DNA of 64,000 bases from Paragordius varius (taxonomy: Eukaryota; Animalia; Nematomorpha), in assembly GCA_964247055.1 (NCBI GenBank), contig OZ176050.1, forward strand, positions 2,170,001 to 2,234,000. The letters run 5' to 3'. The translations under genes were made by a program, and so were the position numbers. Shown here piece after piece: positions 1,830 to 64,000 of this stretch. The notes beneath the pieces are model-generated. The model was given only the letters and a program-made list of their open reading frames with translations. It ran no database searches and had not been told where the DNA came from. Position 1 is the first letter of the stretch, and each line of letters starts with the position of its first letter.

Positions 1830-4800
1830 TTATTGAATATTTATTAACGTAATATTTACATAACTTGTATTTGTATTCATTACACTCGTCTGTCTACCAT
1901 TTTTCATGAGATTTATGAGGGGAGCCTTTTTTATTTCTTTTGTATTAGTTTCAATCAATTTAGATTTTGGCGTTAATGTAGTTGATGTGGTATTTTGTAG
2001 AAGTTCAGTTGTACCAACCAGTTTTTTACTAAGTATGCTTGTCGTTTTCAATGGTTCCAGGGTTGTATCGGTTTTAACTGAGGGCGCAACAGGTAAAGTA
2101 GCTTCATATGGGACATAATCACGAACAATTAAACCAGCTTGTAATAGGTGAGAATCATTGTTTGTTTTGTTTCCATTGAAAATGGGTAAGGGTTTAGTAG
2201 TAGTTTGTTCAGAAATTTCGAGGGATTTTACGGTTATTGTTAAATTATTTAGAGGATTTAGAATGAGAGCAGCTTGAGTTACGTTTTCTGTTTTATTTAT
2301 ATTATGTTCCGCAGTGAGGGGTAAGAATGTTGAATTGATTTTCGTTGCATTATGTTCAATCGTAGGGTTTGTTTCCTGCTCATTTATAATTTTAGGCGCA
2401 GCTTTTATAAAAATTTCATCTAAATCAGATTTTTCTGGGGTTGTTGCGGTTTCTAGAGAAGGTATGATAGTTGTTGGTCTGGTTCCACTCAATCCAACTA
2501 ATTTCAATAAACTTGTATTCAACGGAATACTGGGCTCATTACTAAATGTTACAGAGTTATTATTGTTATCTCCCAAACTGCTTATGGTAGTTATGTGGGC
2601 AACTGTTTTTACAACAAGGGCTGCTTCATTTGTTCCTTTTATAACTTCAACACCACTTTTTATAGTTGTGGACCCAACATTTGTTGTAAATGTAGATTCA
2701 TTTAGAGTCAAATTTTCATTTGATACGTTAGTTAGGTTGGGAAAAAGTGTTTCATTCAAAATTAATGAAGAGATTTGAACTTTCTCTTTGCTTTGAACTT
2801 CAGTTAAATTGGTCGGAATCGGGTGTTTTAACCTACTAAAATTTTTAGCGAAATCCGTTGTGATATCGCTTTTTTCGCTTATGAGAGATGGTATAGAAAC
2901 GTTGCTTGTTAATTCTCTGGAACTAACGGTATACAATATTAAAGGAGCTTGAGTCGCATTTACCACCAAAGTTTGCGTTGAGTTCTCAATAATTAAGACT
3001 GGATTTGGGGAAGAAACTAAATTTTTCTTAGTATAGGGAAGAGTTGTTAAATTGCTTTTAGAACTTGCTTTCTTGGTTATTAGCGAATCATTAATATTAG
3101 AAATAAATTTTTCCAAATCCTCCGTAACTATTAATGAAGCTGTTTTTACTGAATACTTTTTGTCATTCGTTTTCGTTTTAGATGATTTCCCATCTGGAAC
3201 AGATGTATTACTACGACTTCCAACCTTTATTATCTCTTTATGCAAAGAGGCAATACCTGATAGAGCAGTTTTTATATTTTTATCAGAAGAATTATTTTTT
3301 GATTGTGAAACTTTATCATTAATGCTAATAAGTTTTGCTGTTTTTGTTTCGTTAATTGTGATAATTTTGGGGGCACCCACAACGTTAGTTTCCACAATTT
3401 CATTTGCATCTTTCATTGTTTGGGTTGTAGTTTCTAAAATAATATTTTCACTATGAGTTGTATGATCAAAATCAAATTTTGTATGTGATACGGCATTAAA
3501 TGGTGTATCCGAAACTGGGGTAATTGGATTCATGTTATTAACTTCAGAAATGTTTGGGTTACCATTATAATTATTGTTGTTGGTTGAAACAAAGTATTGA
3601 TACAATTTGGAGTTTAATGGCACATTTAAATTGGTGGCAAACAGTTCTTCAGTTATTTTAGTCTGTTCATGCTTAAGATTTGGAGTTTTATAGTTTAATA
3701 AATTTTCAACAATTTTTTGTTGTGGGCCGACGAAATTTGCTTCGAATTGCGACTTTGTTTGTTGGATAACTATGGGATCTCCAGAGCCATTTCTAAATTG
3801 GAGCGTTAATACAGTGCTTGGTATATCGGTAACTGTCAATTTCTTAGGTTTCATAACTGACGAATTATTTCTGCCCTCCTTGGTAAAATTTATTAATGGC
3901 TTAAATGATGTAAAAATATTATTTTCCCAAAAAGTTGTATGGTTTTCTGTAAGCGATTGATTCGACGTTTTCAATTGCCTAACGTAAAAAGATCTCACGA
4001 TATCGTTGTTAATGCGATTAAAAGCGTTTTGAGTATTAGTTTCGGATTCAGATCCATCCAAAACTGTATCATCGATAAGATCATCAAATGAAAATTCTTT
4101 CCTATATCATTATGTATATGACATTATACCCAATGTTTTTTTTTTAAATTATGAAAAAAATATTTATATTTATTAATTTTAACAAAAAAAAACGTTTGCG
4201 GTATAAAACTTGTGACATTCAATCTGTTTGGTGTATAACTTATTTACTTACTATCATGTCAAAAGCCACTTTTAATTATGCTAAAATTACAAAATTGTTT
4301 GTTTTTAAGAATTTATTGCGCAGTAATTTCGTTAAATCATTTATGTTTTTTATATGATTCATTTAAAATTTTAATGGTTTTACTGATTCTTTTTGCGTAT
4401 AATACAGCTGTCACATTTCCCTTGGCATAAATCGAGTTGTAGCGATCCTTTAAGTTCATCCTCTAACATTGCAAAATTAAAGCGATATCCTCTTTGTTCA
4501 GGATACAAACCCCAAGCTAAATGCAGTTTTCCATCGATGATTGGAATGTCAAAAGGATCAATTCTTTGCGCAAACAAGGATGAATCTTGTCTATTAAACA
4601 AGATAAAATTCAGAATCCATAAGACAAAATGGAGACCCGTAATTTAATTTGAGTAAACTATTTTACCAATTTCGATTTTTTGTAAGGAAATAATTTAAAA
4701 TTCTTCTATAGGGACTAACAAACTGGTTATGTTTAAGAAAACAGTAAAGTGCGAAAGAAATTAACAGAATTATGTATTTATATGTGTATTGAACAGACAA

Positions 4801-6848
4801 AAACCATATAATATTTATAAACAGGTAAAATATAATACTATAAAAATGAACCTTTTGATATGATATCTAATGGGTTCATAAATATCGGAATCAGTAGAAT
4901 TTTCTATTGTTTGAGTATCTCTTCTATAATTCAATGTGCTGTTTATGTTTTCCGTAGGAGAGTCTAAATCCTGCGTATCTCTTGTATGCTTGCTTTCTGG
5001 TCCCACACCGGCATAATTATATTGTATGCCTAAATAGCATATATGATACAAATATTAAAGCTCACAAATATAACTATTAGAAATAAAAACTTATAGCATT
5101 TTTTGATTCTTACATAGGTTTATCAATGGTTTTTTAACTCAATAGTATAAAAATTAATTTCAAAATGTAATGTTAATATATATGTAATATGACCTATTTT
5201 CTTCCTAAACATCACAAAAAGGTGATTTAGGGATTCTATTGCGAGAGCGCCTGTTAAAGTTGCATCTGATCGCTGACTTCCACCATAAAAATAATCTGAT
5301 TCTGGGGAGGCAAAACCTGGTCCGGCATATCTAATACAAATAAATACAATTTAACGTTTAAAACGATGTAATCCTAAATTTTGCTGAAATATTATACGAA
5401 ATTCAGATAATTTCTACCAATATTTTGATATTATTTAATGTTTTGAAAATAGCGGGTACCTATCATCCACTCTATGAGTACTCCCATGAGCCATCCCTGT
5501 CATCAAATCTAAACATTCGAATTCACTCAAATTTGCTTCGCTTGGAGATTGGATTCCAGAATAAAATGGAAAATTTTTGCACATTGCAGTCATATTGGGC
5601 CATCGCCAACCCAATCCTATAAAACGATAGATATTATATAATTTTACATAAAAACTCCTAAAATAAACAAATTTAATAATTTACCGATTTGGTGATTAAT
5701 AGGCCCCTTGAGAACTATTTCGATTTCACAACTATCCGTTAGAATGCGCCAAAACAGAGTTAATTTGTTAGATAATGTTACATTGGTGTAATCCTGAGAT
5801 AAACGGATAAATTTAGGAGAGTGGGAGAGGTTAAAACGGTTTAAATCACATTGAGCTGAACATTTTTTCATATAGAAACCATGATGGCAAAAGCACATTT
5901 TCCTAACGATATTTTGAAGATTTACATATTTTTATCCCATATTAAAATTAAACCTTTTTATGTCACACTAAAAATTTATGAGATATCGTTTTGTTTAAAT
6001 TTATTTGATTCTTACTGTGGGAAATAAGTTCGACTGTATTGGTGACAAGAACCTCTTTTCCCGCCTCCGCAGTCTTCCTGATCATCGCATTCCATTTCGT
6101 ATTGGCAATATTCTCCGCGGTAAAGTTGTTTGCACAAACAAGTTCCGTTGTTTGGGTAACCTCGGTTGTAACAAAGTAATTGGAAATCTGTGTTATATCA
6201 TCATAACACTTTTACAAACTTAAAGAAAATAAATTTATAAGAGAAACCTATTCCATTAATTGAGAAACGTTAAAATGCAAAAAATGATAATCGGACCGCC
6301 CAGATGAAATTTGCTGCTCCGTGGGACCAATTTATAGAAATTATCTTATGATCATTCAAATTCATGGTCAAAATTTCGTCATTTTTTACATAAGGTGTGA
6401 TTCTTATATCATTTTATTTTTTTATCATATCAAGTGTTAACAAATGTTATTTTAGTTTTAACGATCTCATTTATTCTTAATAATAGGTCATGCGCAACAA
6501 AATTTAATTTTAATACAATGTTTCAATTATTTTTAAACTATCTATTAAAATATTCCGATATATGCTGCAAATGTTTTTACTTACAAATTTAATTTATATA
6601 TTTTAGCAGCTCGATCGGTGTAATTATATAATAATCCAAAACTCAAAGATTGTATCCAAGACTAAACGTAAAAAACGACCTTTTTTGATGGAGACATCTG
6701 CACAGCTCATAAGTTTATAATTGGTTCCATGAAAATTAACATTTTGACTGAGTCGCATAATGCAATTGGAGCATGTTAGATTTTTCGGTACCGTCCAATA
6801 AAAATTTTGCACGTGCATCGTTCCATTTGTGCATGTTGTCTCGGTAAT
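1830..6848 (-). CDS. Probably secreted EGF-like + DOMON domain protein (nahoda-like family) with a long Ser/Thr/Asn-rich mucin-like C-terminal tail; 5' end not resolved
   Basis: Minus-strand exons give VPKNLTCSNCIMRLSQ...MSCADVSI (about 6660-6848) and EGF-like CLCKQLYRGEYCQYEMECDDQEDCG (about 6020-6187). They continue with CFCHHGFYMKKC...LFWRILTDSCEIEIVL, IGLGWRWP...DLMTGMAHGSTHRVDDRY, DYFYGG...VMFRK and LHLAWG, which are DOMON-like motifs. The 743-codon low-complexity ORF 1830-4061 follows. Confidence 0.72.
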
Positions 6849-7319
6849 CTAATATATTTGAGATAAAGAAAGTCATAAACTTGGTCTTGTAGTTCAAATT
6901 ATGTAAAAGTACTAAGGCTAAACCTATAATGGTCAGATCTAGCAAACTTTACTTTTAACCAATACATAAAAAGCCTTAAGGTAGTATACCAAAAAATTAT
7001 TTTATTTACATCGCTTAAAAAATTGGATACACTACTTGTATTCATAGTTTTTTACCGGTTTTAAGAGAAGATTTTGACGTACGCAGACGATCTATTTGAT
7101 TCAAATCCCATTTTGACATCTAACATAACTGAACTGCATTCCGAGTTCAGCAAAAACATGTGTCTTACTTTTAAAGTTCAGTAATCATAAAAAATTTTGT
7201 GCCTGAAAAACCTTTGCGATCGCATTACCATCAGTAGAAAAAGGCTGTTGATTTTCGTTTCGTGGGAGAAACATAGATTTAATGTAAAAAATGGTTTCGA
7301 TTATAAGTTATGATTTGTG

Positions 7320-8050
7320 GGTCTTGTATACCGCACAACTGCAAGGACGTGCAAGAGTTATTGGATGATGCCTCCACTGAAACTCAGCGGTAATTGGCAG
7401 AAGCATTACATGTATCACAAAAATCGATCAAGAGATTTCTATGATATATGGACCAATAAACTCGGTAAATGGTTCCCTCACAATTTGAATGAACGCGAAA
7501 ATTGAAGAGTTTGTGAGATCCTGCTTGACCGTCACGAAAAGAAATCCTTTGATGATTAATTGATTTTTTTAAATCCAAGTCATTCCATGACGGTAAGGGG
7601 AAAGCGCTTTGGCATAAAACGATGCTCTGCTTGTAGGATCAAGGCGGTAGTGTGTAAAACTAATTAAATTCCCGTTACTATTAATACAAACAATGCCAAC
7701 AAAACCTAATTAAACCATAAATTTATCGAAGAACAACCAGGATGAGCCAGAAAACATGCCAAAACGATACTTACAGACAATGCTTTATCTCGCTCAACAA
7801 AACCAGTGAAAAACATCTAATCCCTTTCTTGGGAATTTTTTTGGCTTCTAATTACCGACTAGGCGCCATCTTACTTATACAATATCAATGGGCCACACCC
7901 TCACAGACAACATTTAAATAATTTCGAAGGCGTTTGAAAATGGCTTGATGAATGGTTTGTCGCATGAGCAATTTTCTGGCACAACATTCATATACTTCTC
8001 GAAAGATGGGCAAAATTTTTAGAAGCTGATGGACAATATTTTGTAAAAAA
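7320..8050 (+). mobile_element. Decayed mariner (Mos1-like) transposase remnant
   Basis: Broken frames give ELLDDASTETQR*LAEALHVSQKSI, LGKWFPHNLNEREN, CEILLDRHEKKSF, SMGHTL, KWLDEWF, ERWAK and ADGQYF. These are collinear with Mos1 transposase (GRWVPHELNERQ, KKWLDEWF, ERWEKCVASDGKYFE). Many stops and indels. Confidence 0.88.
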
Positions 8051-8942
8051 CAATTGATTTTCTTTTAAAATTTCAATTTCTTACTAAAAATTCCCTTACG
8101 AATTCACCAGGTATATGACTTTTGCGCAAAATTTATATTGAAATAATCCAAACATAAACAATACGTTTACTCTCGAAAAATGTGTAAATCCTATTATATT
8201 TTAAATGAAGTGTAAATTGAGAGTTCCACTTCTCGTAATAATTGCTTTTAAATGGTCATATATATTTACATGACGTGGTATTTTTATCTTTGCCGCTATA
8301 GGTATCAAAATTGTGTACATGTAAGTATTTCAAAACATAATTTATAATCATCAAAGCAAAAATGTGTCAACCATTTAGAAAATATATTTTTTAACCATAT
8401 TGTACTGCTAATTTCTTTTTCGCTTTCATAAAATATATCACAAAAATTTGCATATTTATTAAAAAAAATGCTTACCTTGAACTTCTTTTAAACATTTATG
8501 TATGACAAACAAATGTTTTTAACAAAAAAATTTTTTCAAATTGCATCCTAATTTATTATATAAATTATCCGATAACAAGGACCGAACCGACTTAATCATT
8601 AGTTTAATATCTAATCTTCTTATGTTGCATTTACAAAGTGAAATAATGTTGGTTGAAAAAAAATGAAATTATAAAGACGGTTAATTTATGAGTTAAGTGT
8701 GGTTTATATTAAGGAATAACAAATTAAAATCTTACATTATAAACGATGTGGCCTTGCGCATCTAATAATTGTAAGAGAATCGGTCCTGGAAGAGAGTGAG
8801 TAACATCCCAAGTTATTTTGTAGGCAGTTTGCCGTTTCATGGGAAAGGGAATTAAGCTTTTTGCAGTATTCCCGCATGGCGGATTCTATAAAAAATAATT
8901 TATATTGATTTGACAAAACCTAGATGATAGTTTCATCTATTG

Positions 8943-9208
8943 CAGGGGTGTCCAACACAGATGGCTTCGCGGGCCGCATAGAAAATATATAAGGACATTC
9001 ATAAATACTTTTTTCGATTGTAAACATAAGGCTCTAGAATGCAAATAAAAATTCTTTCTAGTTCGATGCCAATTGAATCGACTCATTTCTAAAAATTGTG
9101 TTGGAAATATTAATTTTATTAAGATTTTGTGGACATACTTTTGCAAATAATGTATTTTTTTCGCGGGCCGACAAATAATCTCGAAGGGCCGCGTGTTGGC
9201 CACCCCTC
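8943..9208 (+). mobile_element. hAT-type MITE, copy 1
   Basis: Ends CAGGGGTGTCCAACAC...GCGGGCCGC and GGGCCGCGTGTTGGCCACCCCT form imperfect terminal inverted repeats typical of hAT/Charlie-type elements. No clean TSD. Confidence 0.7.
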
Positions 9209-10672
9209 TATTAAGATATTTATAATGTCAAACTTGTGTGTCAACTCTTTAACTTAGTTTATGATTGCTGATATCAGATTTCCTTATTAAACATTAATTT
9301 GTTTACCTTAGGTGGGTGTACAAAGAATTAATAATCTAATTCTATGAAATATCTAAATAACAGATGATTATTATAGGTAATTAAAATATATAAATACCTC
9401 ATATCCAAAATCCGTGCTTAATTTTCTTGGAATAGGAAAGGTTAATCTCAGGTGAGAATGTGCTCGCTGGATAATAACACCGATGATCAATGTCAAAATG
9501 TAAAAAGTCATTATATTCAGTAACCTATTTTATCATACAATTAAAATTAAATTGGGTAACGCAAAATGTTAACACGAAAAGAATTTTATAAAAATAATAA
9601 AATTATTATGTAATATTCGTTTGTTCGTATTTCACAGTGCACTACTTTCTCTCAAATTCAAACCATAAATTACGCATAAGTTTGGAAAAACAATATGTGA
9701 TTGTTTTTATCCGAAGCTTTTGAGATTCTCAAATCTTTCCTCTCCAACGCACATATTGCTTCAAAATGGAGAGTAAAAAATGTGCGTATTTTATAATTTC
9801 GCTCCTATGGAAAAGAAAACAATAGGTCGTTCGTCATAAATTGTAATGCACAAGAATTTAATTTATGGAATTTTTATACGGATCAAAACACTTTAAAAAA
9901 TGTATTTGCACAAGGTTAACTTATCTATTAAAATTAATATCCTTTCAATTACAAATTTTTAATATAACAAACATAAAAAATATTTTTTGCATTTACTATT
10001 TGCGGAATCGGGATTTAAGAATGTATGTATATGTTTTGTGGTTGAATAAAAATGCGTAAAAATATTTTTTTTGTAGTAACGTTATTGGACAAAAAATAAA
10101 TGCGACGACTTACACACTACTTCATTACTAACAAATGATAACTAATTTTCTCTATCCAATGTTTTTTTTTTAATTTCGTAAAAGTACGTAAACCACATAA
10201 TAAAAACTATCATTTGCCTGTGCGTAAGACATGACATATATATTTTTACGATTTTTAATGTTCAAAAAAGCGACAATTTTTAAACAATGATCCTACTAGT
10301 CTGAATGATTATTTCGTGTTAAAATTATCAAACAGTTTTTCACGTCATTAATTTTTTGTATGTGCTTATAATTCATTGGTTGGATACACAAGATATCATG
10401 GTTGAATTTAAAATACCAAATAAATCTATATTTTGAAAAATCTGTCTTATATAGGCGTCTAATCTGTACATGGACAAATGTTATAGTTAATCGGACAAAA
10501 ATTTGTGGTTACATGTCATCCTATAAAATTAATTTCAAAAAAACGCGAAACAGTTCATTAATAGTTTTTTGGCAATCGCTTTTTTAATTATGGACCTAAA
10601 CGATATTTTACCGCATAATCTCTAAAATAACATTAAAAGATATTAAATCCAGAATCGTAATGTTGGATAATA

Positions 10673-10811
10673 AATAAAAGCGTCTATGGGGTGTTACTAT
10701 AAATATTTAAATTATTTAAAAAGCTATGAAAATTATAAATTTATAAAAGCGTCTATGGGGTGTTACTATAAATATTTAAATTTTTTAAAAAGCTATGAAA
10801 ATTATAAATTT
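10673..10811. repeat. Tandem duplication of a 69-bp unit (2 copies)
   Basis: The unit AAAAGCGTCTATGGGGTGTTACTATAAATATTTAAATT(A/T)TTTAAAAAGCTATGAAAATTATAAATTT recurs, with CGTCTATGGG at 10681 and 10750. Confidence 0.95.
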
Positions 10812-11894
10812 AATCTAATCTTATTTGTTGAAGGTTGCTTTGGATATGGCCTTAAAGTTTCTCAGCTGCTGTCCACTAACTAATTTTAAAAAAGCATGGC
10901 ATAAATGAAAAAATAATGTTTTCAGATAAAATTACTAATTTGATTATAAATCATAGTGTATGTAGCAAAATTTTTCATAAATTTGCTGGTATATGCTTTT
11001 TATAATATGAATAGTTAGGTGTGCATGCCCGGCCAAATTTGGCGTTTTTCATAAATAGATAATATTTAACAAAATATGATTGCATTTAAATTTGGGCCTT
11101 TTATAATCTCAATATTATTGAAATACGATTTGGTACATATTTTAACTTCATTATTTTTTAGTTTTTTACAAAAGGGCTAATATAAAAACGAATTATAATA
11201 TATTGGCCCAAATTTTGCAATATTTTATTTTATCACCAAAAGCGTCTGTGACAATCTAAGAATGCAATTCATATACTTTAGCTGCTTATCCGCTATTGGT
11301 TTGATCCATTTCTATTGCAAATCTTGTAAAACCTACAAAGTGAACACACACACAAAATCTGCCTTATGTCGCATTATTAAAATAAAATCGATTAGATTGA
11401 ATCTTAATTTCTTATTTTATTTATTCTTGGAAAATTTCGCGACTATCGATTGGGAATATTTTAATTTTACCACGACTAACGGTATCTTAAAACATATTTC
11501 AAATAAGCCAATTTATAATGAGAAAAAAACGGAACGAATCAAAAAAGTGGCTCCACCATGTTCTTCGCACTAATATATTAAATATAATTGAATAAAAATG
11601 ACTTCAAATGTACGTTTTTAGGAAATTGGATATAATAAAAGACATGCTTTTGGTTTTTGTATTTTTATTATCTATATTTGATCACAGAGGCTAATTTTAA
11701 AATATGATAATAGGCGCATTAATATAAATATAACAATTGTGGGTAGATCGCTTTTTTTAAATTGTTTTAATAAACTATTTAAAGTTTCTCAACTAACGCA
11801 GAAAATATGTTGCTTAAAAATAGCTTTTTATTGGGTGGACTATTCGTTATTATAATTTAACAATTACGTGGAATGATTTGAGCATTTATCATTT

Positions 11895-11937
11895 TTTATC
11901 TGCGGCCTGCGAAGCCATTTGTGATGACCCAGCCGTG
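11895..11937 (-). mobile_element. Isolated end of the hAT-type MITE
   Basis: TATCTGCGGCCTGCGAAGCCATTTGTG closely matches the reverse complement of the 5' end of the copy at 8943. Confidence 0.5.
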
Positions 11938-12822
11938 ATCTAATACGTACTTACATGATTAAAGATGTAATCCGTATCATATTTTCTCGTCCTTAATATT
12001 TTACAATGACATAGGCCAAAACATTCGCTTATAAAATATTTTTAAACATAAATTATTGCTCGTTGACTGATTGCTAACTTTTCTGATAAGCACAACCTTT
12101 AAATGAAACATCTTACACATGGCTTTTTATAATCTTAAACAGGCTTTTTCAGTGATTATCTCATCTCTTCTTGGTAAAATACGATTCTGGACAAAATATT
12201 TCTAGTTGTCTTTTGTTTAAAATGTTTATTTTCAGAATTTTTTGCAAACAGCTACACATTTACAATTCATTTAAATTTGCAGTTATCTTTTGAATGTGAT
12301 TCTATTGGCAAAAAATAAGCGAAAAAATGTCTTTATGCTATTACTTTCTAGGAACTTAACATGTATTGATAATTAGTAAATAAGGTTATAGATTAAAATT
12401 GATAAAAATTTATACCATTTGATACCGAATTTTTGTAAAAGGCAGAGCTGTTTTTGGATTTTTTTAGTTTAAATAAGGTTCTAAAAAAGCTTTCAGTTCC
12501 TATTTTAATTGTTCTGGTTTCACTCCTAGCGCTTTTATAACGCAGAGCAACAATTATAACCGCTTAGAAGCTATATTGATATATATTGTAAATCAATTAA
12601 AATATAAGAAATAAAGGGTTGATAAATTAACTCTCTTTTAAAGACCATCTAATAAAATCGCTGGTTTCAGAAAATAAAACATCCTCGATATTTGTACCGT
12701 ATAATTTATAAGGTTACTAATATTTATTTGATATTTGAATTTGATATTTGTACTTATAAATATAATTGTATACTATCTATGGACATCAAAATTAATTGCA
12801 ATAGAAACGACCCATAATTAAT

Positions 12823-15800
12823 TTATGGCATTAATAAACGAGTATTTGTAATAAAGTAGGAATTGGTATTGCGTTCAACGTCATAAAAAATTTCGAGTGC
12901 CCCATGAAATATTGGATACGTATGTGATTGTGCTTTAAGTCGTTCGTTCCAAAATTCTATGACTTTATTGAGTTCTTTTATCAGCAAATAATATTTACCC
13001 TTGGTTAGGGCCAATGTAAAAATATTCGAATCACAAAGGTCAGGGAAAAAATTGAGGAAATCTGGACCCCATAGGGTGGCTGGTAAAGATATTTGATTAG
13101 CATCATGTAATATGAGTGTCATTGCAAACGTGTATTCCATTTTGCTTTGACAAATTGGGCAAATTAGTTTGGTTTCAGATTCAACACTACCAATAGTTAT
13201 ATCATGGTTAGCGTCTTGTAGAAAGTGACAATCCCAACAATGAAGTTGCATTAAATGACAACTTATATTTTGAGTAGTTATTTTGGAAACATTGGGTATA
13301 ATTGCTTTGATGCCACAACAAACATTGGCTGTTCCTAGACTAGGCAATTTATATGCTACATTCGTTTGAGTAAGGGAGGTAGGGAAGAGATTTTGTTTAT
13401 CCATGTGTGACATTAAATACTCTATTATCCGTTTTTGGTTTAAGGCGTGAAATTTTTTTAACGATAAAAAAGATGGATTGATTGAATCTGAATTTATGAG
13501 TGTAGTTAATAGTTCAATTTTTGCATTTTTTGAAGGTGTGGTTTTCGTTGCTGATACATAGTATTCTTTGCAACAGTCTGGAAGTGTAAGAGATAATGTA
13601 TTTGGATTCGAACCAGGTATTACATTTAAAATTTGAATATCGTCATCTTCTTGATAGCCTAAAAATTAAACATTAAATATACCATTTTTCATGCAAAAAC
13701 ATCATTTTTTCAACCAAATGCAACATTTTTTCAACCAAACTCAACATTTTTTCGAGCAAACGCAACATTTTTTCAACCAACGACAACATTTTTTCGAGCA
13801 AACGCAACATTTTTTCAAGCAAAGACAACAATTTTTCAAGCAAACGCATCATTTTTTTCATCCAAACGCAACAGTTTTTCAACCAACGACAACATTTTTT
13901 CAAGCAAAAACAACAATTTTTTTAAAATAAACCATTTTTTTTATTTTAAGACATATTAAATTTAAAGTTAGTGTAAATTAATTTTAGGGTATATTTATGA
14001 TTTTTATTGTTTTATCATCAATATTTGATGGTATGATTGATTTTCAAACATTTTAATTTAGCCCATAAATTGCATTATTTATTTATAAATATTTTTTTAT
14101 CAATTAATACAATTTGCGCTTTAAGACTCTCTTTAAAAATTTAAAGTTATCCTTCGCTTTAAATTCCTTACATTTTAGCAGTTTCCATACAACCGTTTTT
14201 TTTGTGTGTAATTATCTATTTTTTAAATTTAAACTAACATCTTTATTTATTAGTTTTTGAATCAAAATTAATATTTTCATAGTAAAACAACTTTGTTTGA
14301 AAATTTTCTTTAATTTATCAATATTATAAATTTATTATTGTTTTAAACTAAATATTACCATCAATAACCCACAAAACATAGATATTTTTTAATATTAATT
14401 TATAGAAATAATAAGGATATACGGTTATGAAAGAAATGTATTCACTTAAAGGTTTAGGTTAAATAAAAAAATAGGTTTAAATGATTGAATAATGAATATT
14501 TTATTGCCTCATTAATAAACGTTAGAATCAAAATTAAATATTGAAGATCAACTTGAAGTGTTCGAGGACTAAGTTTAAATGTAAAAGAACAATCTTGAAG
14601 CGCAGTATAACTTAAATTGTAAAAGAAAAAATAATTAATATAAATAAATAATGCAATTTATGGGCTAAATTAAAATGTTTGAAAATCAATCATACCATCA
14701 AATATTGATGATAAAACAATAAAAATCATACTACCCTAAAATTAATTTACACGAACTTTAAATTTAATAGTCTTAAAATAAAAAAAATGGTTTTTTATTT
14801 AAAAAAAATTGTTGTTTTTGCTTGAAAAAATGTTGTCGTTGGTTGAAAAAATGTTAAGTTTGGATAAAAAAATGTTGTCTTTGGTTAAAAAAATGTTGCG
14901 TTTGCTTGAAAAAATGTTGCGTTTGCTTGAAAAATTGTTGCCTTTGCTTGAATAAATGTTGCGTTTGCTCGAAAAAATGTTGTCTTTGCTTGAAAAAATG
15001 TTGCGTTTGCTTGAAAAAATGTTGAGTTTGGTTGAAAAAATGTTGCATTTGGTTGAAAAAATGATGTTTTTGCATGAAAAATGGTATATAATCATTAATA
15101 AATCCTTTTCATATACATTTAATGAAACATTAAAAAAGTCAAGTTTTTAAGCATAATTATATATGACTCAGTTAATCAAAGATTATCATACCAAAAAAAA
15201 CAAACATAATTTAATCAAAATTGTTACCGTTTTGTTTAGATGTCTCCGGATTGTGAACATTTCTAGATGAAGAAGGATTGGGTACTGAGATATTATTGTT
15301 AATCTTGTCGGAGGGTTGGTTTACTGACACGGTACCCTTATCGGATTTGAAAGGAAGATAGAGATTACAATATTTTGAGGAATAATATGAATTATCGGAT
15401 AATTCCATAGACATACCGGTATCTTGAGTGAGAGTTTGCTCATCATAAAGAATTTGAAATTCGGATAATTTTGTCGAAATTCGTTCATGTAAAGCTTGGT
15501 GAGATTCTGATGTTTGTTCCAGTAATTTAAGGCCTCGCTTGAAGTTTTTCCTTCCATTCCCATGGACAATAAACTCCAATTGGCTATCATTCTCATTCTT
15601 CTCAGGTAAAGTAATTCGTTTTATGTGAACATTTGTTATGGAAATATAATCTCCTAGTTGAAATAGCAAGAGATCTGGTACATGGTCATCATAAACGTAA
15701 ATGGGTAAAATATAATCCAGTACGATTGGCAGGTGAAACCATTTTGTCTCGAAATCTTGCACAAACTTAACGGTTGCTTCTTCGTTTGTGGAAAAAACTG

Positions 15801-16605
15801 GTGGTTTCAATCTATCGTTGTAAAAACGTAATAAATTATAAATATTTTATTAAGATGAGATATAGTTGCAAGCGAATGCGCTTATAACAAAATATCTTCT
15901 TAAATAATTATAAGTATTTTTGGAATATTATATTTATAAAAAGCCGTTTATTATGACTCTATCCTCTAATCTGAAAATGGCTTAATACAAGAGTTTTTAA
16001 GATAATGTTATCTACTTGTTTGTGTGTGATTTATGAGAGATGCCATCCCATACAAATATTAAAGCGCGGTCTTTATGAAAAACTACCTGGCCAATCAATT
16101 GAACATTGAGATCAATGTATGTTTTTAGGGTCGTTTGATCGGAGAGAGCACTATTTACAATTATATGAGGAGAGTGAGATCGGGATAAAGCCACCTGCGT
16201 ATTTTGCAAAAGTAAGATATGATTTTTGTCAACACTTGTTAATTCGGATGAACGTGGATAAGAAAATAAAATTTGTGGATTCAAAAGACTACCTGTAGAT
16301 TCGGCAATGACTAATAGGGAGAAACCTTTAAAACCAACTCCGCGCATTTCATCATTAAAGCTTTCAATTTTAATACGATGTAATCGTAAAATCTGTTGTA
16401 TTTCAAAATTAAATTTTATAGGCTTTTCAAAGAATAGATTGCAGAGTAGAGACGGTGAATCCGCCAAATAGTTTTCGGAAATACGTAAAGTAATATTTTT
16501 AAAAGGGTTTAGATCGTTATATGATTTAATCCAGGTGAGAATTCCGAATACATTAACTTTCCTGTTAATTTCAAAATCACAAAATTTTGTGTAAACAGTG
16601 ACCAT
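12823..16605 (-). CDS. POT1: Protection of telomeres protein 1
   Basis: Three exons (16605-16016, 15811-15228, 13659-12823) join in phase, about 670 aa. OB1: KVNVFGIL...LLCNLF...ILRLHRIKI. OB2: YIDLNVQLIG...IFVWDG, IYVYDDHV, LEFIVHG...KRGLKLL. C-terminal OB fold: LHCWDCHFLQ...CPIC...MEYTFAMTLILHD. Confidence 0.9.
13677..15089. mobile_element. Foldback-like element: long inverted arms with 21-bp tandem repeats, inside POT1 intron 2
   Basis: Arms about 13677-14095 and 14640-15089 are reverse complements. Each has ATATACCATTT termini followed by about 11 (left) or about 13 (right) copies of CAACATTTTTTCAAGCAAACG-like units. No coding capacity. Confidence 0.9.
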
Positions 16606-34914: not shown

Positions 34915-37557
34915 ATGCGTATGAAAATATACTTTTTTTCTACGATGAGAATTTACCAATTCAACAATTCTCACAAGGATTCGAATTCTACGTCGATAAA
35001 ACCAAAACTATTTTCCAATCCTAACAGCAATACAAAAAATATAAAGCCATTGCGTTTAAAACATATATTTCAAGTTTTTACGCAATATTCTATATATCTC
35101 TTGATAGGCATAAACCTTCGGTTATGGTATCAAGTTTTAGTTTGCCATATAAATATGTGTAATGATTGTGGTATTCAACGCTTTACTTTCCAATATCTTA
35201 AAAAAGGCCTACAAACAAATGTTAGGAATGAGCTTGATACAATATCTAACATCGTCATTTCAGCAAACGAGGAGAATAGTATGGAAGAATGCACATTGGA
35301 TCAGATCGAAAGATGCAACAAAGTATCGAGCTGTCCAGTTTGCCCGGAACACATGGAAAAACATCTCAAATCAAACGATATAGATCGCAGTAAACGGCAT
35401 ATCGAAACATCTTTCAGTAGTCTTTCTATTCCTTACCCCCATTCATCAGATGAATATTCAAAATCTAGTGAACACTCCAATGATAACAATAACGTTTATC
35501 GATATCAATATTTTGATGATTACTTTTTGTATGACACATTTGAAGCCGAACCCAAGATCCCACTTCCGGGTTATTATAAAAAAGTCATCAAACATATTGA
35601 AGACAGTGCTCTGAGGTAGGCAAAAATTAATGTGTTAATTATTTTTATCATTGATTTTTAAACTATTTGTTATAATTCGTCCCTAAATACCGAATCGGTA
35701 AGCCTCTTTTATCTAAAATATTCAAAGTTTAAATACCATAACAGCTAATAAGTTAACAAATCTTTATGTTTTATTAAAACGTCTAATGTTCAAAGATTTA
35801 AATCATCACCTTGATATCTAGATACATTTAATATAAGAAAAACGCAGGACACTCGTAAATTATTCATCAAAGAGTTAATTTAAATTATAAAAATACGAAT
35901 AAGCTACAAAAGCCGTTGTTTATACTGTTAAGAATTCTAATAAATTTACTTGTGTATGACCATGATTTAAATACCTTAATAGGTATCGTTCAAATATTTA
36001 CATGCTTAGTTAATTATAAAACAATTTATTGCACTAATGAGCGGATGACGTAAATTAGTTTTTGCTTTTATCAAGGAATTCCTATGGCCCCATTATATTG
36101 TATTATGTGAAGGTCTTTTTTATAATGTAATCTTAATTAAATTTACTTTTCAGGCATTTAAAATTATCATTTTGCGTGTTAGCCGAATTTTATCACAAAT
36201 CTAATTTTAGTGATTTAGGGATTAAAGTTTATACTATCATATAGGCTAATAAACCAAGGGAATAAACAACGCTGGCGCCTTCAAAAGATTCTGAATGGTT
36301 ACCTCCGACATGAATCTGGAATCGGGACATTTTACAAGATTGATTTGCGGTTTGCGAGAAACCTCAATAAAAATAATGGGAAAGGTGTTGAATTTATGAC
36401 TAAACGTTTACAATACACACATCCATTTGAACGCGTTTTTCTGTTATCTTCGGAGGAATTAAGTAATATTGTTTGGTTTTAATATACGCTTAAATAGGAA
36501 ATGAAGGTGGTGATATTATTCACGTTATTTTGCCATTGGCTGGGGGCAAAGATATACCACTCCGATTTAAAAAATTTCTTTTGGAACAATTCGGATTCGT
36601 AGGCCATTTAGGCCTAATACTGTACGTGGTTTTATTCGTGGAAGAAACGCCTGACATAGAATTATTGGAAATGAATCGGATTATTAAAGAATTTTCTGAA
36701 GAGCACACGGGAAACTACGAAATCAAGTAGGCTAACATTTTCCTCTACATATAAATAAAAGATTTCATACTTTTACAAACCATCAAAGTAGTTAACCTTT
36801 TTCAAAAAAATAAAAATTATTTGTGCTATAATTTTTGTTTTTCAACAATTTTTAAGGTTAATTTCTACGGAGGGAAGATTTAGCAGAGGCAAGGCCTTAC
36901 ACATTGGTGCAGAAGCGGTCGAGGGTGATAATCAGCTCATGTTCTTTTGTGATGCTGATATGACTCTCACACCCAAGTTTATTGAGAGATGTCGGCAAAA
37001 CACGCACTTAAATGGCCAAGTTTATTATCCTATCGTTTTAAGCCAATATAATCCTGAAATTGTTAGAAATTTTAGCGACTCGACATTCGATCCAAATGAT
37101 ATCTCTTCTAAAATAAGTGCTAACATCGGTAATACAATGATATTCTAAGTAAATAGGTCATTGGGTAAATTATGGTTTTGGATTAGTCTGCCTCTACAAG
37201 GCTGATTATAAAGCGGTAAACGGTTTTGACTTGAACATTACGGGTTGGGGAATGGAGGATGTCGATCTCTACGAAAAACATGTCAAACACCCACGAATAA
37301 AAGTATGCAAAATTAGACTTTTTTTTATTATTATACTTTTTTAGTAAGCTCTTTTTATTTTATGGGCAAAGGTTTTTAGAAGTCAGGATCCTGATTTAAT
37401 TCACATTTATCACGATAAATTGTGCGATTCTCGACTTAAACCACAACAGTTTCAAATGTGTATCGACACAAAATCTGAATCTTATGGCAATGAAGTCCAA
37501 CTTGGGCGCAAAGTTCTTACAACTATAGTTGATCAACATCTTGGCCCGTATTTTTGA
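34915..37557 (+). CDS. Chondroitin sulfate synthase-like GalNAc transferase (CHGN/GT7 domain); start codon uncertain
   Basis: GRFSRGKAL, LMFFCDADMT (DxD), VYYPIVLSQYNP, GHWVNYGFGLVCLYK, GFDLNITGWGMEDVDLY, VFRSQD...HIYHDKLCD and QFQMC, all close to the recalled CHSY1 C-terminal domain. Stop TGA at 37555-37557. Confidence 0.88.
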
Positions 37558-37604: not shown

Positions 37605-39846
<2,242 letters not shown>

Positions 39847-40236: not shown

Positions 40237-40562
40237 ATGCATTTAAATTTCGTTCTTATTGCGATGATAATGGCAAAGGTATATAAAAAATTTTAAGTTA
40301 ATAAAAGGTTACGGCCACATTTAATGGGCAAAGCGTGGATAATCATGAATATTTATTGATTGATAAAGAAAGGAATCTTTTTGCCTGTATGCCAAAGAAA
40401 TGGACAGCTTCTAATGCCTGGAACAGCCAAGATACTTATACCGCTTTTGAAATGTCAAAATTATGTGATGGATTTGAAGATTGTTTAGATGGAAAAGATG
40501 AAACTCAGGGATGTACCAAAAGGCAAGAATGGAATATTCGAGATATATATTTAAACAAATAA
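40237..40562 (+). CDS. Small (98 aa) secreted protein with an LDL-receptor class A-like motif
   Basis: ATG at 40237; a 29-nt phase-0 GT-AG intron (40279-40307) joins MHLNFVLIAMIMAK to VTATFNGQSV...FACMPKK...LCDGFEDCLDGKDETQGC. AATAAA lies directly at the stop. Confidence 0.7.
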
Positions 40563-40605
40563 TAAATATGCACCAAAATTATTTATTTCCATAAAAGAAT
40601 ATTAA

Positions 40606-42146
40606 TTAAGCAGCAGATGGAGTCTTGATTTTCGAAAGCATGAATTCCTTGTTAATGAGATGGACAGCATGATTAACGTGATTCATAACAGCTTCATTAT
40701 TGCGGGCCCACTCATCTTCGGCACTTGGGGTGGTCGTCGGTGTGGGTAAGCTTGTCATTTCCACAAAAGTTATTATATCTATGAAAAATAAATAAAAATG
40801 TAACTGTCCAAACGATCAATTTTGGCTTGAACCAATTTATCCACAACGGCTTTCTGCAAAAAAGTTTCGGTTTCCTCGATCGGCATAGAGAGCAATTGAG
40901 ACATTCGACTTAAACTGATTCTTTGATAGTAGATAGATAGTATTCTAATATTCTATAAAAGTTTTATAAACATAAATAAACATGTTCATTTATTCTATTT
41001 TTCATGTCCACATCCCATTCCAGTGTTAGGAAACAGGCAGGAATGGTGCCATATCCAGCAATATTTTTAATATCCGCAAAGTCTTGGCTAAATTTCTTAA
41101 AGTCAATAATTTCATTCGTAAGAAAACATTTTATTAACAATCTGAATAAAAGTTAAGCAATACTTAAATTTTGGTATATGGTCAATATTTTTATCTTTAC
41201 CAATTCGATTTAGCATATCTATCTGCTCGTTGGAATATTGCGCTAAAATTGTATAAATTATTATGTTGGATAAAATCTGAAATATATTTGGAGAATTATA
41301 CAAGGTCTTTAGTCTGCTTATCAATATCGATAGAAGGTAAATCGTATATGTATTTATAATGGGATGCAATCAAAAGATACTGCTTTTCATGTTGATACAA
41401 TTGAATCATTAATTCAAAATATTTCAATTTTAATTTATCATCCTTCAAATCTTGTAAAGTTTTTGAAGTGATTTTTTTGCTAATAATTTGCATCCGCAAA
41501 TAATCAGAATTTAAAATACACAAGCGCATTTGTTCAAGAATAAATTCAAATTTTTCAATCTTCTCCATAGCACCAAGTGTATCAATCTTAAATTATATTT
41601 TGTATAAGACCTGAACATCGTGTAAAACATCCATAGCTTCTTTTATTTTGCCTTGCGATTCTTTAATTTCAGAAAGGATTTTTGTCAAACGAGCGCGTTC
41701 AATTTCAACATATAGCTATTTTAGATTAAATAATAACTTTTCCCTGTGTAACTTCTCTTACTGTTTCAATTAAATCAAGTTTAACATTTAAATCATCAAT
41801 CTTTGATACATAAGTGCACACTTCTTGGATCAACTTAATAACTGCTTGCTTAAGTTGGTTGCGTTTTTTTGTGAAAACTTTCAAATTTTCATTCAACAAA
41901 ACCCATTTTTTATTTTCAAAACATATTTGGGCGATTGCAATCATAACTTTGGCTGTCGAATTCATATCACACGATGTTCTTGTAAGTTTTTCCATATTAC
42001 TTAACATGTTAATTGCTCCATCCAATTGTCCATTCTTAAATAAATAAAAATTAAACTTTTGCAAGTGATATGCAATCAGGAATTAGCTGATCGACTTCTT
42101 TGGAATAATCAATTTCCATTTTTTGAGTAGATAAAGCGTCCGTCAT
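40606..42146 (-). CDS. PSMD12: 26S proteasome non-ATPase regulatory subunit 12 (RPN5)
   Basis: [10 protein letters not shown]...[30 protein letters not shown]|[40 protein letters not shown]|[18 protein letters not shown] and HLINKE. Eight exons, seven introns of 22-29 nt. Confidence 0.97.
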
Positions 42147-60529: not shown

Positions 60530-63500
60530 ATGGAAAATCCCGGAGATACATCATTTAGTAATGCACAAAATCCTCTAATCGAATAATTCTTGAACCATTT
60601 GACGAATGTTACAATTTCAAAAATTATGTCAAGCACATAGAAAGGGTACTAGCGGCCAGGGATATTCCTGTCACGGATTCCAATATAAAAAAATTATTTT
60701 TTACTTTCGGTGGTATTAAAATTTTGAACAAAATTGAAAATATTCTATATCCTGATACCATCGAAGATTTGGAATGGCTGGAAATCTATAAAATTGCAGT
60801 TCAAATCTATGCCCCAGACAAAAGTCTATGGGTGAATAGATGTGCATTTTATCGTATTCGTCGTGGTGATAATGAATCTATTCTTTCGTATTTAGAACGT
60901 TTGAAAATTTTGGCCGACAATTCTGGATTTGATTCGGACATTTCTAACAAAATCAGGGATATATTTTTGATTGGATTAAATCAACCCAGATTAGAAAGAG
61001 AACTCCACATAAAATATCCGCTCGGTAAGTTAGATGACAAACCACTGACACTACAAATGTTGGTCGATATGGCTTTAAGTTTTGAGGAAGCCGATAATCT
61101 TCCCTCGCAAATCAATAAGCTTAAAGTGGATAGATCCAGAAATGTAAAACCTCATGGAAGTTTTAACAAGGGCCATTATAACAATAATAATTATAAAAAC
61201 AATAAGAATAATGATGTCCGGCATAATAATGATACTAAAGTAAATTGCCGAAATTGTGGATCACTGCATGTGAGAAACAAGTGTCCGGCTTGGGGCAAAA
61301 CGTGCTACAATTGCAACAAAAATAACCACTTTAGTTCAATGTGCAAAATAAAGTTGGTGAGAAATTTAGATGAAATTAGATCTATAAAAGCGGGCACTAC
61401 CCCTAAAATAAAAGTGAAGATCAACAATAATATGATAGATATGATTTTCGATACCGGTGCTGACTGCTGTCTCATAAGTCAACAAATATGGAAGCAGATC
61501 GGTAGCCCTAAGTTAACGTGGTCCGATCAAATAACCACGTATGATAATAATAAAATAACAATCTTAGGGAAAACTATGGTCACTGTGACGTTGTACAATG
61601 AAAAGAAAACGTTACCATGTATCGTAACTAAAAGCAATTTTGATCCAATTTTTGGATTACCTTGGATAAAGTACAAGCTACCTTTTCCAAAAAATGTAAA
61701 CAATAATATAAATTCTAATGAGAAGATGAAGCTGACCAAAATATTTCCAAAACTATTCTCAAAGGAACTTGGTTGTTACAACGGCAATCCGATCAAAATT
61801 TTTTTGACACCGGATGCAAAACCAAAAGCTTTTCCATGCCGTAGAGTTCCTCTACCATTGCAACAATTGGAAGAAAATGAATTGAATAGATTGTTAGATT
61901 TGGGAATTATAGAACCAATAGACCCAACAACAACTGAGATATCTTGGGCAACCCCAACGGTCAACGTGTTAAAATCCAATGGGGAGGCTCGTATCTGCGC
62001 CGATTTTCGTGTCACAATCAATCCTTATCTATCAAAAGATTCTCATATCATTCCGACATTTGATCAATTATTGGGTAAAATCGGAAATGGACATTCATTT
62101 TCAGTTTTGGATCTCAAGGATGCCTACTTACAACTACCGGTTGATAAAGAATGCTCTAATATTCTGACAATTACAACACACAGAGGTTACTTTACGTATA
62201 AACGATTACCTTTCGGGCTCACAAATGCTCCAATGATATTTCAACGAGTTATGGATCAAATTCTGGATGATTGCACAGGCGTTTGTGCTTATCTGGATGA
62301 TGTTCTGGTAACCGGCAATACACACACTCAACACAAAGCAAATCTTGAGCATGTGTTGGAGAAACTTGAACAGGCCGGATTCCGTTTGCAACCAGATAAA
62401 ATGAAATTCTTCCAGGAAAAAGTATCCTACATGGGATACGAAATATCTAAAAGAGGTATTAAGCCAACGGATGAAAAAATCAAGGCTATTTTGAAATGTT
62501 TTGTTCCAAAGGACAAAACAACATTACGGTCCTTTTTAGGACTATTAAACTTTCATGAAAAATTTATTCCAAGATTACATTCAGTCATAAGTGATCTGCA
62601 CACTTTAACTGGATACAAAATGCCATGGAAATGGGAGAATATTCATGATAAACAATTTGCACTGTCAAAACAACTAATAGCAAATTTTGTAACTGATTCT
62701 GTACAATCCGCAATTGCCATTATTGATTGAGACCGATGCTTCAAACGAAGGTTTGGGTGCCATCCTTTTCCATGTAACCGAAGATGGCAAGCGGCCAATC
62801 TCTTTCGCATCCAGGAAATGTTTATTTAAAACATTATTCGACGATCGAAAGAGAGGCCAAGGCGATTTTGTTCGCGGTAAACAAATTTCACCCTTTCATA
62901 TATGGGAGATCTTTTAAAATATTGACTGATCATAAACCACTGATTAAATTATTTGGGGAAGACCGGAACTTAACCGGAGTCACTAATATAAAATTATTAC
63001 GTTGGATTTCAAAATATCGGGGTATGATTATACCATTCATTTCAATAAAGGGGTTCAAAATTTAGCTGATCCCCTATCAAGATTAGCAATTGACGATCCT
63101 GAAATGGATGATGATCATGCTGTAGCTGAAAAAATTCGGTTCTTATCTATGAACGATTTGAACATTAATAAAAAAATGTATTAGATCAGTCCAATAATGA
63201 CCCGGTGATAAAAAAATTAAAAATTGCATTAAATTCCAACAATTGGGATGATCCAGATCTAAAAAATTATCAATCACATCGCAACGCTATCCAAGCATCG
63301 TATAATTTAGTTTATTTCGAGGATAGACTCATTGTTCCTAGATCCATGCAAAATGAAGTCCTAAACTACTTTCACACTGGACACCCAGGGATAAGTACCA
63401 TGAAGTCCCTTGCGCGCCACAGTGTATATTGGCCAGACTTGGACCAAAGTATTGAATTGCTTGCGAAGACATGTGACTCATGTCAAAGATACAAGCCCAA

Positions 63501-64000
63501 TGTCCAGGAAAATCCAACATACAAATGGAATTTCAACACCGCCGTCTGGGAAAGAATACACATAGATATTGCTGGTCCCATTGATAATTTCTACTGGCTG
63601 GTAACAATTGACAGCTCGTCCAGATGGCTGGAAGTTAATTTATTGAAACAAGTTAGGAGCAGGTCTGTTTTAAATTGCTTAGAACAATTGTTTTCGAGAT
63701 ATGGTTTTCCTAAAATGATAGTAAGTGATAATGCATCGTATTTTGTATCGCACGATTTTGATGAACGGCTAAACACTTAAACATCAAACATGTTACGTCG
63801 AGTCCGTATCACCCACGAACGAATGGGTTGGTAGAAAGATCTATTTACACATTGAAAACTAAATATAAAGCTACGAAGAGGGCTGACATCTCTCCGCAAG
63901 AAGCAATGAATACCATTTTGTGGAGCTATCGGCAAGCAATTCATAGTGCAACGAGAGCAACACCGTGCTCATTATTCCTAAAAAGAGAATTGTTAGGTCC
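60530..64000 (+). mobile_element. Decayed Ty3/Gypsy LTR retrotransposon, Mag clade, single gag-pol frame; truncated by the window edge
   Basis: Twin zinc knuckles CRNCGSLH...CPAWGKTCYNCNKNNHFSSMC, protease FDTGA, RT LDLKDAYLQ...RLPFG...YLDD, RNase H ETDAS...TDHKPL, integrase H...GHPG...C..CQ, RIHIDIAGP, VSDNA and PYHPRTNGLVER, in PR-RT-RH-IN order. Frameshifts or stops near 60585, 62715, 62830, 63000, 63180 and 63775. Confidence 0.97.

Follow-up and report, generated by a model that had tools for sequence, protein, structure and literature searches.

A complete PSMD12/RPN5 gene with seven introns of 22–29 nt, six of them at ancient bilaterian positions

To our knowledge, it was believed for a long time that animals could not have introns shorter than 30 nt. 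The introns of Paramecium are approximately 25 nt long, and those of the Bigelowiella nucleomorph are 18–21 nt long. It is known that human ultra-short introns of 43–65 nt depend on SPF45/RBM17 in place of U2AF. In a survey of 51 animal genomes dated September 2026, introns below 30 nt were found only in dicyemids and in myxobolid myxozoans, and were tied to parasitism and genome reduction (PMC13644364). The median intron of the myxobolids Henneguya salminicola, Thelohanellus kitauei and Myxobolus spp. was 22–27 nt; myxozoans with introns of this size have an A-rich feature in them, together with a conventional U2 snRNA and both U2AF1 and U2AF2 (PMC13644364). Dicyema introns have been described as mostly below 30 nt, with a median of 27 nt (Ogino 2010, via PMC6543705; PMC6736024). 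Introns of 15–16 nt in Stentor are cited in the survey (PMC13644364). Hairworms are not mentioned in the main text of that survey, and the hairworm genome papers that were consulted do not mention introns. For Gordionus, a GC content of 26.9% and a BUSCO score of 71.6% have been reported.

The DNA described here is a stretch of 64 kb, which is called the window below. It is evenly AT-rich, with a GC content of 25–37% per 2 kb and approximately 29% overall, a value that fits the one given for Gordionus. On its minus strand lies a complete PSMD12/RPN5 gene (40606..42146), running from an ATG at 42146 to a TAA at 40606–40608 and comprising 456 codons. The anatomy of the gene can be read directly from the DNA. 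Removal of seven segments leaves a coding sequence of 1,371 nt in eight stop-free exons, which is 170 nt shorter than the colinear locus of 1,541 nt, and if they are left in, the reading frame meets stops after each exon. The segments are 22, 22, 24, 25, 22, 29 and 26 nt long (introns 1–7), and all seven begin with GT and end with AG. An earlier note on this DNA had claimed these introns from the letters alone; their coordinates, lengths and GT-AG ends were all verified on the minus strand. They are also as AT-rich as that note had held: the GC content of individual introns is 9–27%, and the pooled value is 17% in the introns versus 32% in the exons.

The gene model was tested exon by exon, each exon being searched singly. 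The best matches in the PDB were human and rat PSMD12. Exon 1 (42057..42146) contains 30 codons including the start ATG, and an in-frame TAA is found 18 nt upstream of this ATG. Exon 2 (41738..42034, 99 codons) corresponds to residues 38–135 of human PSMD12. The 35 codons of exon 3 (41611..41715) exactly fill residues 136–170. Exon 4 (41302..41586) starts at residue 171, with the aligned part covering 171–260, and its 95 codons end at residue 265, directly before exon 5 (41164..41276, 37 codons plus 2 nt), which takes up residues 266–302 and is matched from its second residue (267–302). In the Pfam PSMD12-CSN4_N profile, exons 2, 3 and 4 occupy positions 2–94, 96–129 and 130–216, respectively; in other words, they abut on the profile as well as on the human protein. 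Exon 6 (40982..41141, 1 nt plus 53 codons) is the least conserved part and carries the conserved R-x-x-E-H motif at its end. Exon 7 (40805..40952, 49 codons plus 1 nt) encodes the PCI domain, and exon 8 (40606..40778, 2 nt plus 56 codons plus the TAA) encodes the RPN5_C domain. The three Pfam domains are thus arranged in the order PSMD12-CSN4_N, PCI, RPN5_C. Two codons are split by introns. Joining across intron 5 restores the conserved stretch I-P-K-[FY]-K, and joining across intron 7 restores D-R-L-x-x-I-I-x-F. When the exons were placed as separate rows in an alignment with five PSMD12 orthologues, they tiled end to end with neither gap nor overlap, and exons 2, 4 and 7 were approximately 45–55% identical to an animal orthologue, which means that the protein is not strongly diverged. 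Judged from these matches, the gene is PSMD12/RPN5, encoding a lid subunit of the 26S proteasome. Both the identity given to it in the earlier note and the claim that removal of the introns restores the RPN5 motifs are borne out.

Downstream of the gene, a putative polyadenylation signal, AATAAA, is located at 40582..40587 on the minus strand, 18 nt past the stop codon. An open frame (40335–40562, plus strand), noted earlier as coding for an LDLa-motif protein, is convergent with PSMD12 and ends 43 nt before the PSMD12 stop. Since the AATAAA sits between the two convergent stops, either the 3' untranslated regions overlap or they are extremely short.

The positions of the introns were compared with those in eight PSMD12 loci: Hyalella (amphipod), Macrostomum, Crassostrea virginica (oyster), Branchiostoma belcheri (amphioxus), Polyodon spathula (paddlefish), Zootermopsis (termite), Nymphon (sea spider) and a PSMD12-like gene in a Zophobas assembly. 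Each annotated protein was mapped onto its own DNA to give the intron sites and phases, and each exon was then aligned to each protein. The oyster, amphioxus and paddlefish genes have ten introns in common, which are referred to here as the canonical set. Intron 1 (42035..42056, 22 nt, phase 0) is at a site common to the oyster (708 nt), amphioxus (412 nt), paddlefish (443 nt), sea spider (777 nt) and Macrostomum (1,440 nt). Intron 2 (41716..41737, 22 nt, phase 0) has counterparts in the oyster (265 nt), amphioxus (227 nt), paddlefish (408 nt), termite (395 nt) and sea spider (79 nt), and intron 3 (41587..41610, 24 nt, phase 0) in the oyster (349 nt), amphioxus (409 nt), paddlefish (861 nt) and Macrostomum (632 nt). 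The site of intron 4 (41277..41301, 25 nt, phase 0) is occupied in the oyster (102 nt), amphioxus (503 nt), paddlefish (1,162 nt) and sea spider (80 nt). Intron 5 (41142..41163, 22 nt) is in phase 2, and both site and phase are common to the oyster (356 nt), amphioxus (126 nt), paddlefish (204 nt), amphipod (253 nt), termite (418 nt) and sea spider (1,290 nt). Intron 6 (40953..40981, 29 nt, phase 0) shares its site with the oyster (542 nt), amphioxus (243 nt), paddlefish (287 nt), amphipod (887 nt), termite (803 nt) and sea spider (87 nt).

Introns 1–6 therefore coincide with six of the ten canonical introns, identical in codon and phase (for intron 5, in phase 2), and several of them also coincide with sites in Nymphon, Zootermopsis, Hyalella and Macrostomum. 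The chance of at least six such matches in seven tries is approximately 1e-12. Because six canonical sites are matched in both codon and phase, coincidence is excluded, and the claim that these are real intron positions is supported. The counterparts are 102–1,379 nt long in the oyster, amphioxus and paddlefish, and 79–1,440 nt long across all the animals compared. On this positional evidence, introns 1–6 are orthologous to ancient bilaterian introns. Four members of the canonical set (Polyodon sites 55, 98, 219 and 386) are absent here, and are read as ancient introns lost outright. Since six of the seven tiny introns sit at ancestral bilaterian positions, the tiny introns are shrunken ancient ones and not an artefact.

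Intron 7 (40779..40804, 26 nt, phase 1) is required for the frame and for the D-R-L-x-x-I-I-x-F motif. Its site has a counterpart in one of the eight compared loci, the PSMD12-like gene in the record labelled Zophobas morio. It should be mentioned that this gene, in the 2001–16026 region of JAVQLY010000206.1 (GCA_036711695.1), has 19 introns, lies in DNA of only 18% GC and has diverged much further than the PSMD12 of other beetles. A nearly identical protein is also found in a JGI metagenome. The source of this gene may be a contaminant organism rather than the beetle.

The same sites bear on the idea that the seven segments are cut out of the DNA itself, either as eliminated sequences of the ciliate IES type or by programmed DNA elimination of the nematode type. 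The somatic gene would then be intron-free and would need no unusual splicing. Paramecium eliminated sequences are similar in length, and the 22–29 nt found here resemble them in this respect. However, the segments are bounded by GT and AG rather than by TA, six of them are at ancient spliceosomal sites in the same phase, and contigs of a public DNA run, the tissue of which is not stated, keep the segments, none being excised. Elimination at the DNA level is considered very unlikely.

Five public sequencing runs hold the stretch, none of which is on record as RNA. In the contigs of the run that holds it best, PSMD12 is unspliced and all its introns are kept, which identifies this run as DNA. 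Introns 5–7 are covered by a single contig, and intron 1 by a contig of a divergent haplotype, in which the length of this intron is unchanged. In this second haplotype, the beginning of exon 2 (42006–42033) differs by eight substitutions over 28 nt, with synonymous and replacement changes mixed. The recurrence of the introns in these contigs removes assembly error as an explanation. A related proposal, which treats the locus as a pseudogene in decay or as an artefact of assembly and the short segments as chance insertions, would have to accommodate an intact frame of 456 codons with all three domains present, and seven insertions that are all bounded by GT and AG, six of them at canonical sites, which is beyond chance. 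In addition to the recurrence of the segments, the only indel within exons of the DNA-run contigs is an in-frame 3-nt insertion of TCG in exon 6 (41017). This proposal can be given practically no weight. A functional, single-copy PSMD12/RPN5 gene, in which all seven spliceosomal introns have shrunk to 22–29 nt, is the reading that we hold with high confidence on the basis of the sequence features described above.

Further public runs were considered. In five runs that bear the same species label and are guessed to be RNA, next to none of the words of this stretch were found. Three of these, which are less than 90% alike to this DNA, gave no junction in PSMD12. Their single match there, 35 nt inside exon 3, was rejected as spurious: it is A-rich, and its flanks do not read as PSMD12.

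The gene that adjoins PSMD12 as the next one on the same strand encodes an SRPK kinase (37608..39507, minus strand). Its introns are at 39283-39313 (31 nt), 39160-39194 (35 nt), 39041-39071 (31 nt), 38907-38933 (27 nt), 37987-38224 (238 nt) and 37796-37823 (28 nt). Across introns of 35 and 31 nt, the exons abut seamlessly on human SRPK1. The other SRPK introns (31, 27, 28 and 238 nt) were read from the frame and from similarity judged by eye, and the spacer region at approximately 38400–38760 may hold more. On the plus strand, the 3' part of a CHGN-type (chondroitin N-acetylgalactosaminyltransferase) glycosyltransferase gene (36882..37554) contains introns at 37129-37156 (28 nt) and 37303-37371 (69 nt). 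The Pfam profile of CHGN is unbroken across the 69-nt intron, and is continuous to within one residue across the 28-nt intron. The three public runs guessed to be RNA come from a related but different organism, and their contigs match only the two most conserved CHGN blocks. There, the related organism has 174 letters where the window has 246, and the spliced form would have 177. One of its contigs runs colinear with the spliced form across the 69-nt intron, and the match breaks at the acceptor of the 28-nt intron; this is comparative support only.

The three adjacent genes together provide 15 definable introns, of which 13 are 35 nt or shorter and ten are 30 nt or shorter; none is shorter than 22 nt, a length that three of them have. 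PSMD12 stands out in that all of its introns are in the small class, whereas SRPK and CHGN mix small introns with those of 238 and 69 nt. The same size class occurs in SRPK and CHGN, so that it is no peculiarity of one gene, and the word "regime", which the earlier note had used for the splicing, is appropriate as far as three homology-anchored genes allow. A protein-free census of micro-introns was also made over the 64-kb window, in which open frames were joined across GT...AG under tightness rules and were then scored for codon usage trained on PSMD12 and SRPK. In this census, GT-AG candidates did not outnumber those with control dinucleotides or those in the reversed sequence; the procedure was too noisy in AT-rich DNA.

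Splice signals were tabulated from 12 micro-introns, seven of PSMD12 and five of SRPK, which is a small sample. GT and AG are the sole invariant signals (12 of 12). Position 3 is A in six, T in five and C in one, and there is no consensus further in. At the 3' end, position −3 is T in eight, A in two and C in two. An A is found at −11 to −13 in six or seven of the 12, and T makes up 58–67% at −10 to −3, compared with 36% in the window. It had been claimed that a real polypyrimidine tract is lacking. This is correct in the sense that a full tract is missing, but a short T-rich run is present at −10 to −3. The only micro-intron with a textbook motif resembling a branch site is intron 5 (41142–41163, minus strand), in which CTTAAC is located 11 nt before the AG. 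A U12-type reading of this intron was rejected, as its 5' end is off the U12 donor consensus. An Rfam scan of the 64-kb window gave no snRNA and no other RNA family, and the window contains no splicing-factor gene either.

Retention of any of the seven PSMD12 introns leads to an in-frame premature stop, and in six of the seven this stop is inside the intron itself. Intron 3 is the sole PSMD12 intron with a length that is a multiple of three, and it carries an in-frame TAA. Since every retained intron gives a premature stop, unspliced transcripts would make no protein; they could be cleared by nonsense-mediated decay.

From these features we infer splicing itself, together with a branch site and the kind of spliceosome that acts. 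The tiny introns would most likely be removed by the ordinary major (U2-type) spliceosome, through intron-definition recognition of very small signals. The 5' signal would be GT plus A or T. The A-rich zone approximately 11–13 nt before the 3' end is the probable branch site, and it would be followed by the T-rich run of approximately 8 nt and then by the AG. On the basis of seven introns, the earlier note had proposed that the spliceosome is modified and has a strict lower limit of approximately 22 nt. By analogy with the myxozoans, a modified spliceosome would not be required for 22-nt introns, because myxozoans with introns of 22 nt have conventional U2 and U2AF. A floor near 22 nt is compatible with the 12 micro-introns, which do not establish it. 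By analogy with the human ultra-short introns, a different factor may be needed at the 3' splice site where the pyrimidine tract is truncated, as a candidate mechanism.

Several other features of the window should be mentioned. The coding region of an LTR retrotransposon is located at 60724–63780 (plus strand), in the order zinc knuckle, aspartyl protease, reverse transcriptase and then integrase (Pfam), and has the highest GC content of the window. An open frame of 743 residues (1830–4061, minus strand) is rich in Ser, Thr and Asn. It matches no Pfam domain, and a search of 5.8 billion proteins gave no homologue. Candidate explanations are a mucin-like gene specific to the lineage and chance in biased DNA. 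Open frames are also found at 15211–15810 (minus strand), 16012–16605 and 12823–13413 (minus strand), one of which matches the ssDNA-binding domain of the telomere protein POT1. The two frames of approximately 196 residues beside it, which lack a Pfam match, may be parts of that gene.

The PSMD12 protein itself does not point to any particular phylum. Its best scores are against animal orthologues, approximately equally against those of molluscs, vertebrates and arthropods, and the summed exon scores favour no phylum. A protein search with exon 2 gave three fragments of 52–56% identity, an exhaustive search with exon 4 gave no match above 63% identity, and a profile search built from five orthologues and five exons as separate rows gave general animal PSMD12 only. 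Neither a close relative nor a hairworm PSMD12 was found in any of these searches (exon 2, exon 4 and profile).

Ultra-short introns are probably unpublished for the lineage of this genome. It is considered unlikely that the genome is that of a dicyemid or a myxobolid, for which such introns would be nothing new. The intron lengths of both groups and the GC content of Henneguya salminicola would agree with such an origin, but the GC content of Dicyema japonicum, the 45–55% identity of exons 2, 4 and 7 to an animal orthologue, and the LTR retrotransposon and 238-nt intron of the window speak against it. We lean slightly towards the view that introns below 30 nt arose here independently, for the third time in animals after Dicyemida and Myxobolidae, and for the first time in a genome that is large, rich in transposons and not compact. 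In such a genome, ancient introns would have shrunk to a floor of 21–22 nt, with long intergenic DNA and some long introns retained. If this is so, the miniaturisation of introns would be uncoupled from genome compaction. PSMD12 does show extreme shortness of introns in surroundings that are not compact, as the LTR retrotransposon and the 238-nt intron in the window indicate. A third origin would also mean that part of the "rampant gene loss" and of the low BUSCO values of horsehair worms could be failure of gene finders on micro-introns. If the organism is a horsehair worm, it would be a third animal lineage with such introns, and a natural system for determining the minimum of bases that a metazoan spliceosome needs. 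The default intron-length limits of aligners and gene finders would in that case break many genes, and could inflate the gene losses that have been reported.

All seven PSMD12 introns fall in the animal ultra-short class (30 nt or shorter), their 5' motif being reduced to GT and a weak third base and their 3' motif to AG. The likeness to dicyemid and ciliate introns, which the earlier note had drawn, agrees with the literature (PMC13644364, PMC6543705). As in Dicyemida, animal GT-AG introns below 30 nt are set in a conserved exon-intron structure, in a parasitic host, and only GT and one weak position are left of the 5' signal (PMC13644364). Dicyema japonicum differs in its small genome of 67.5 Mb (scaffold N50 1.0 Mb), which has a GC content of 36.7%, compared with 29% in the window. 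Unlike Dicyema, the window contains retrotransposons and kilobases of non-coding DNA, and the neighbouring genes have introns of 69 and 238 nt.

The Myxobolidae resemble this locus in their weak splice-site motifs, in an A-rich stretch upstream of the 3' AG that is taken as the branch site, in the clustering of short introns within a gene and in an AT-rich genome. The GC content of Henneguya salminicola (assembly of 74.9 Mb, contig N50 2.2 Mb) equals that of the window. The Myxobolidae differ in being fast-evolving cnidarians with heavy gene loss, whereas the PSMD12 protein described here is about equally close to its mollusc, vertebrate and arthropod orthologues. The introns of ciliates and nucleomorphs share with the present ones a narrow length class near the physical minimum, stops on retention and a conventional spliceosome that is thought to act on them. 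However, they belong to unicellular lineages or to an organelle-like genome, whereas PSMD12 here keeps bilaterian intron positions. The SPF45-dependent ultra-short introns of human have a truncated pyrimidine tract like that of the introns described here, but are two to three times longer.
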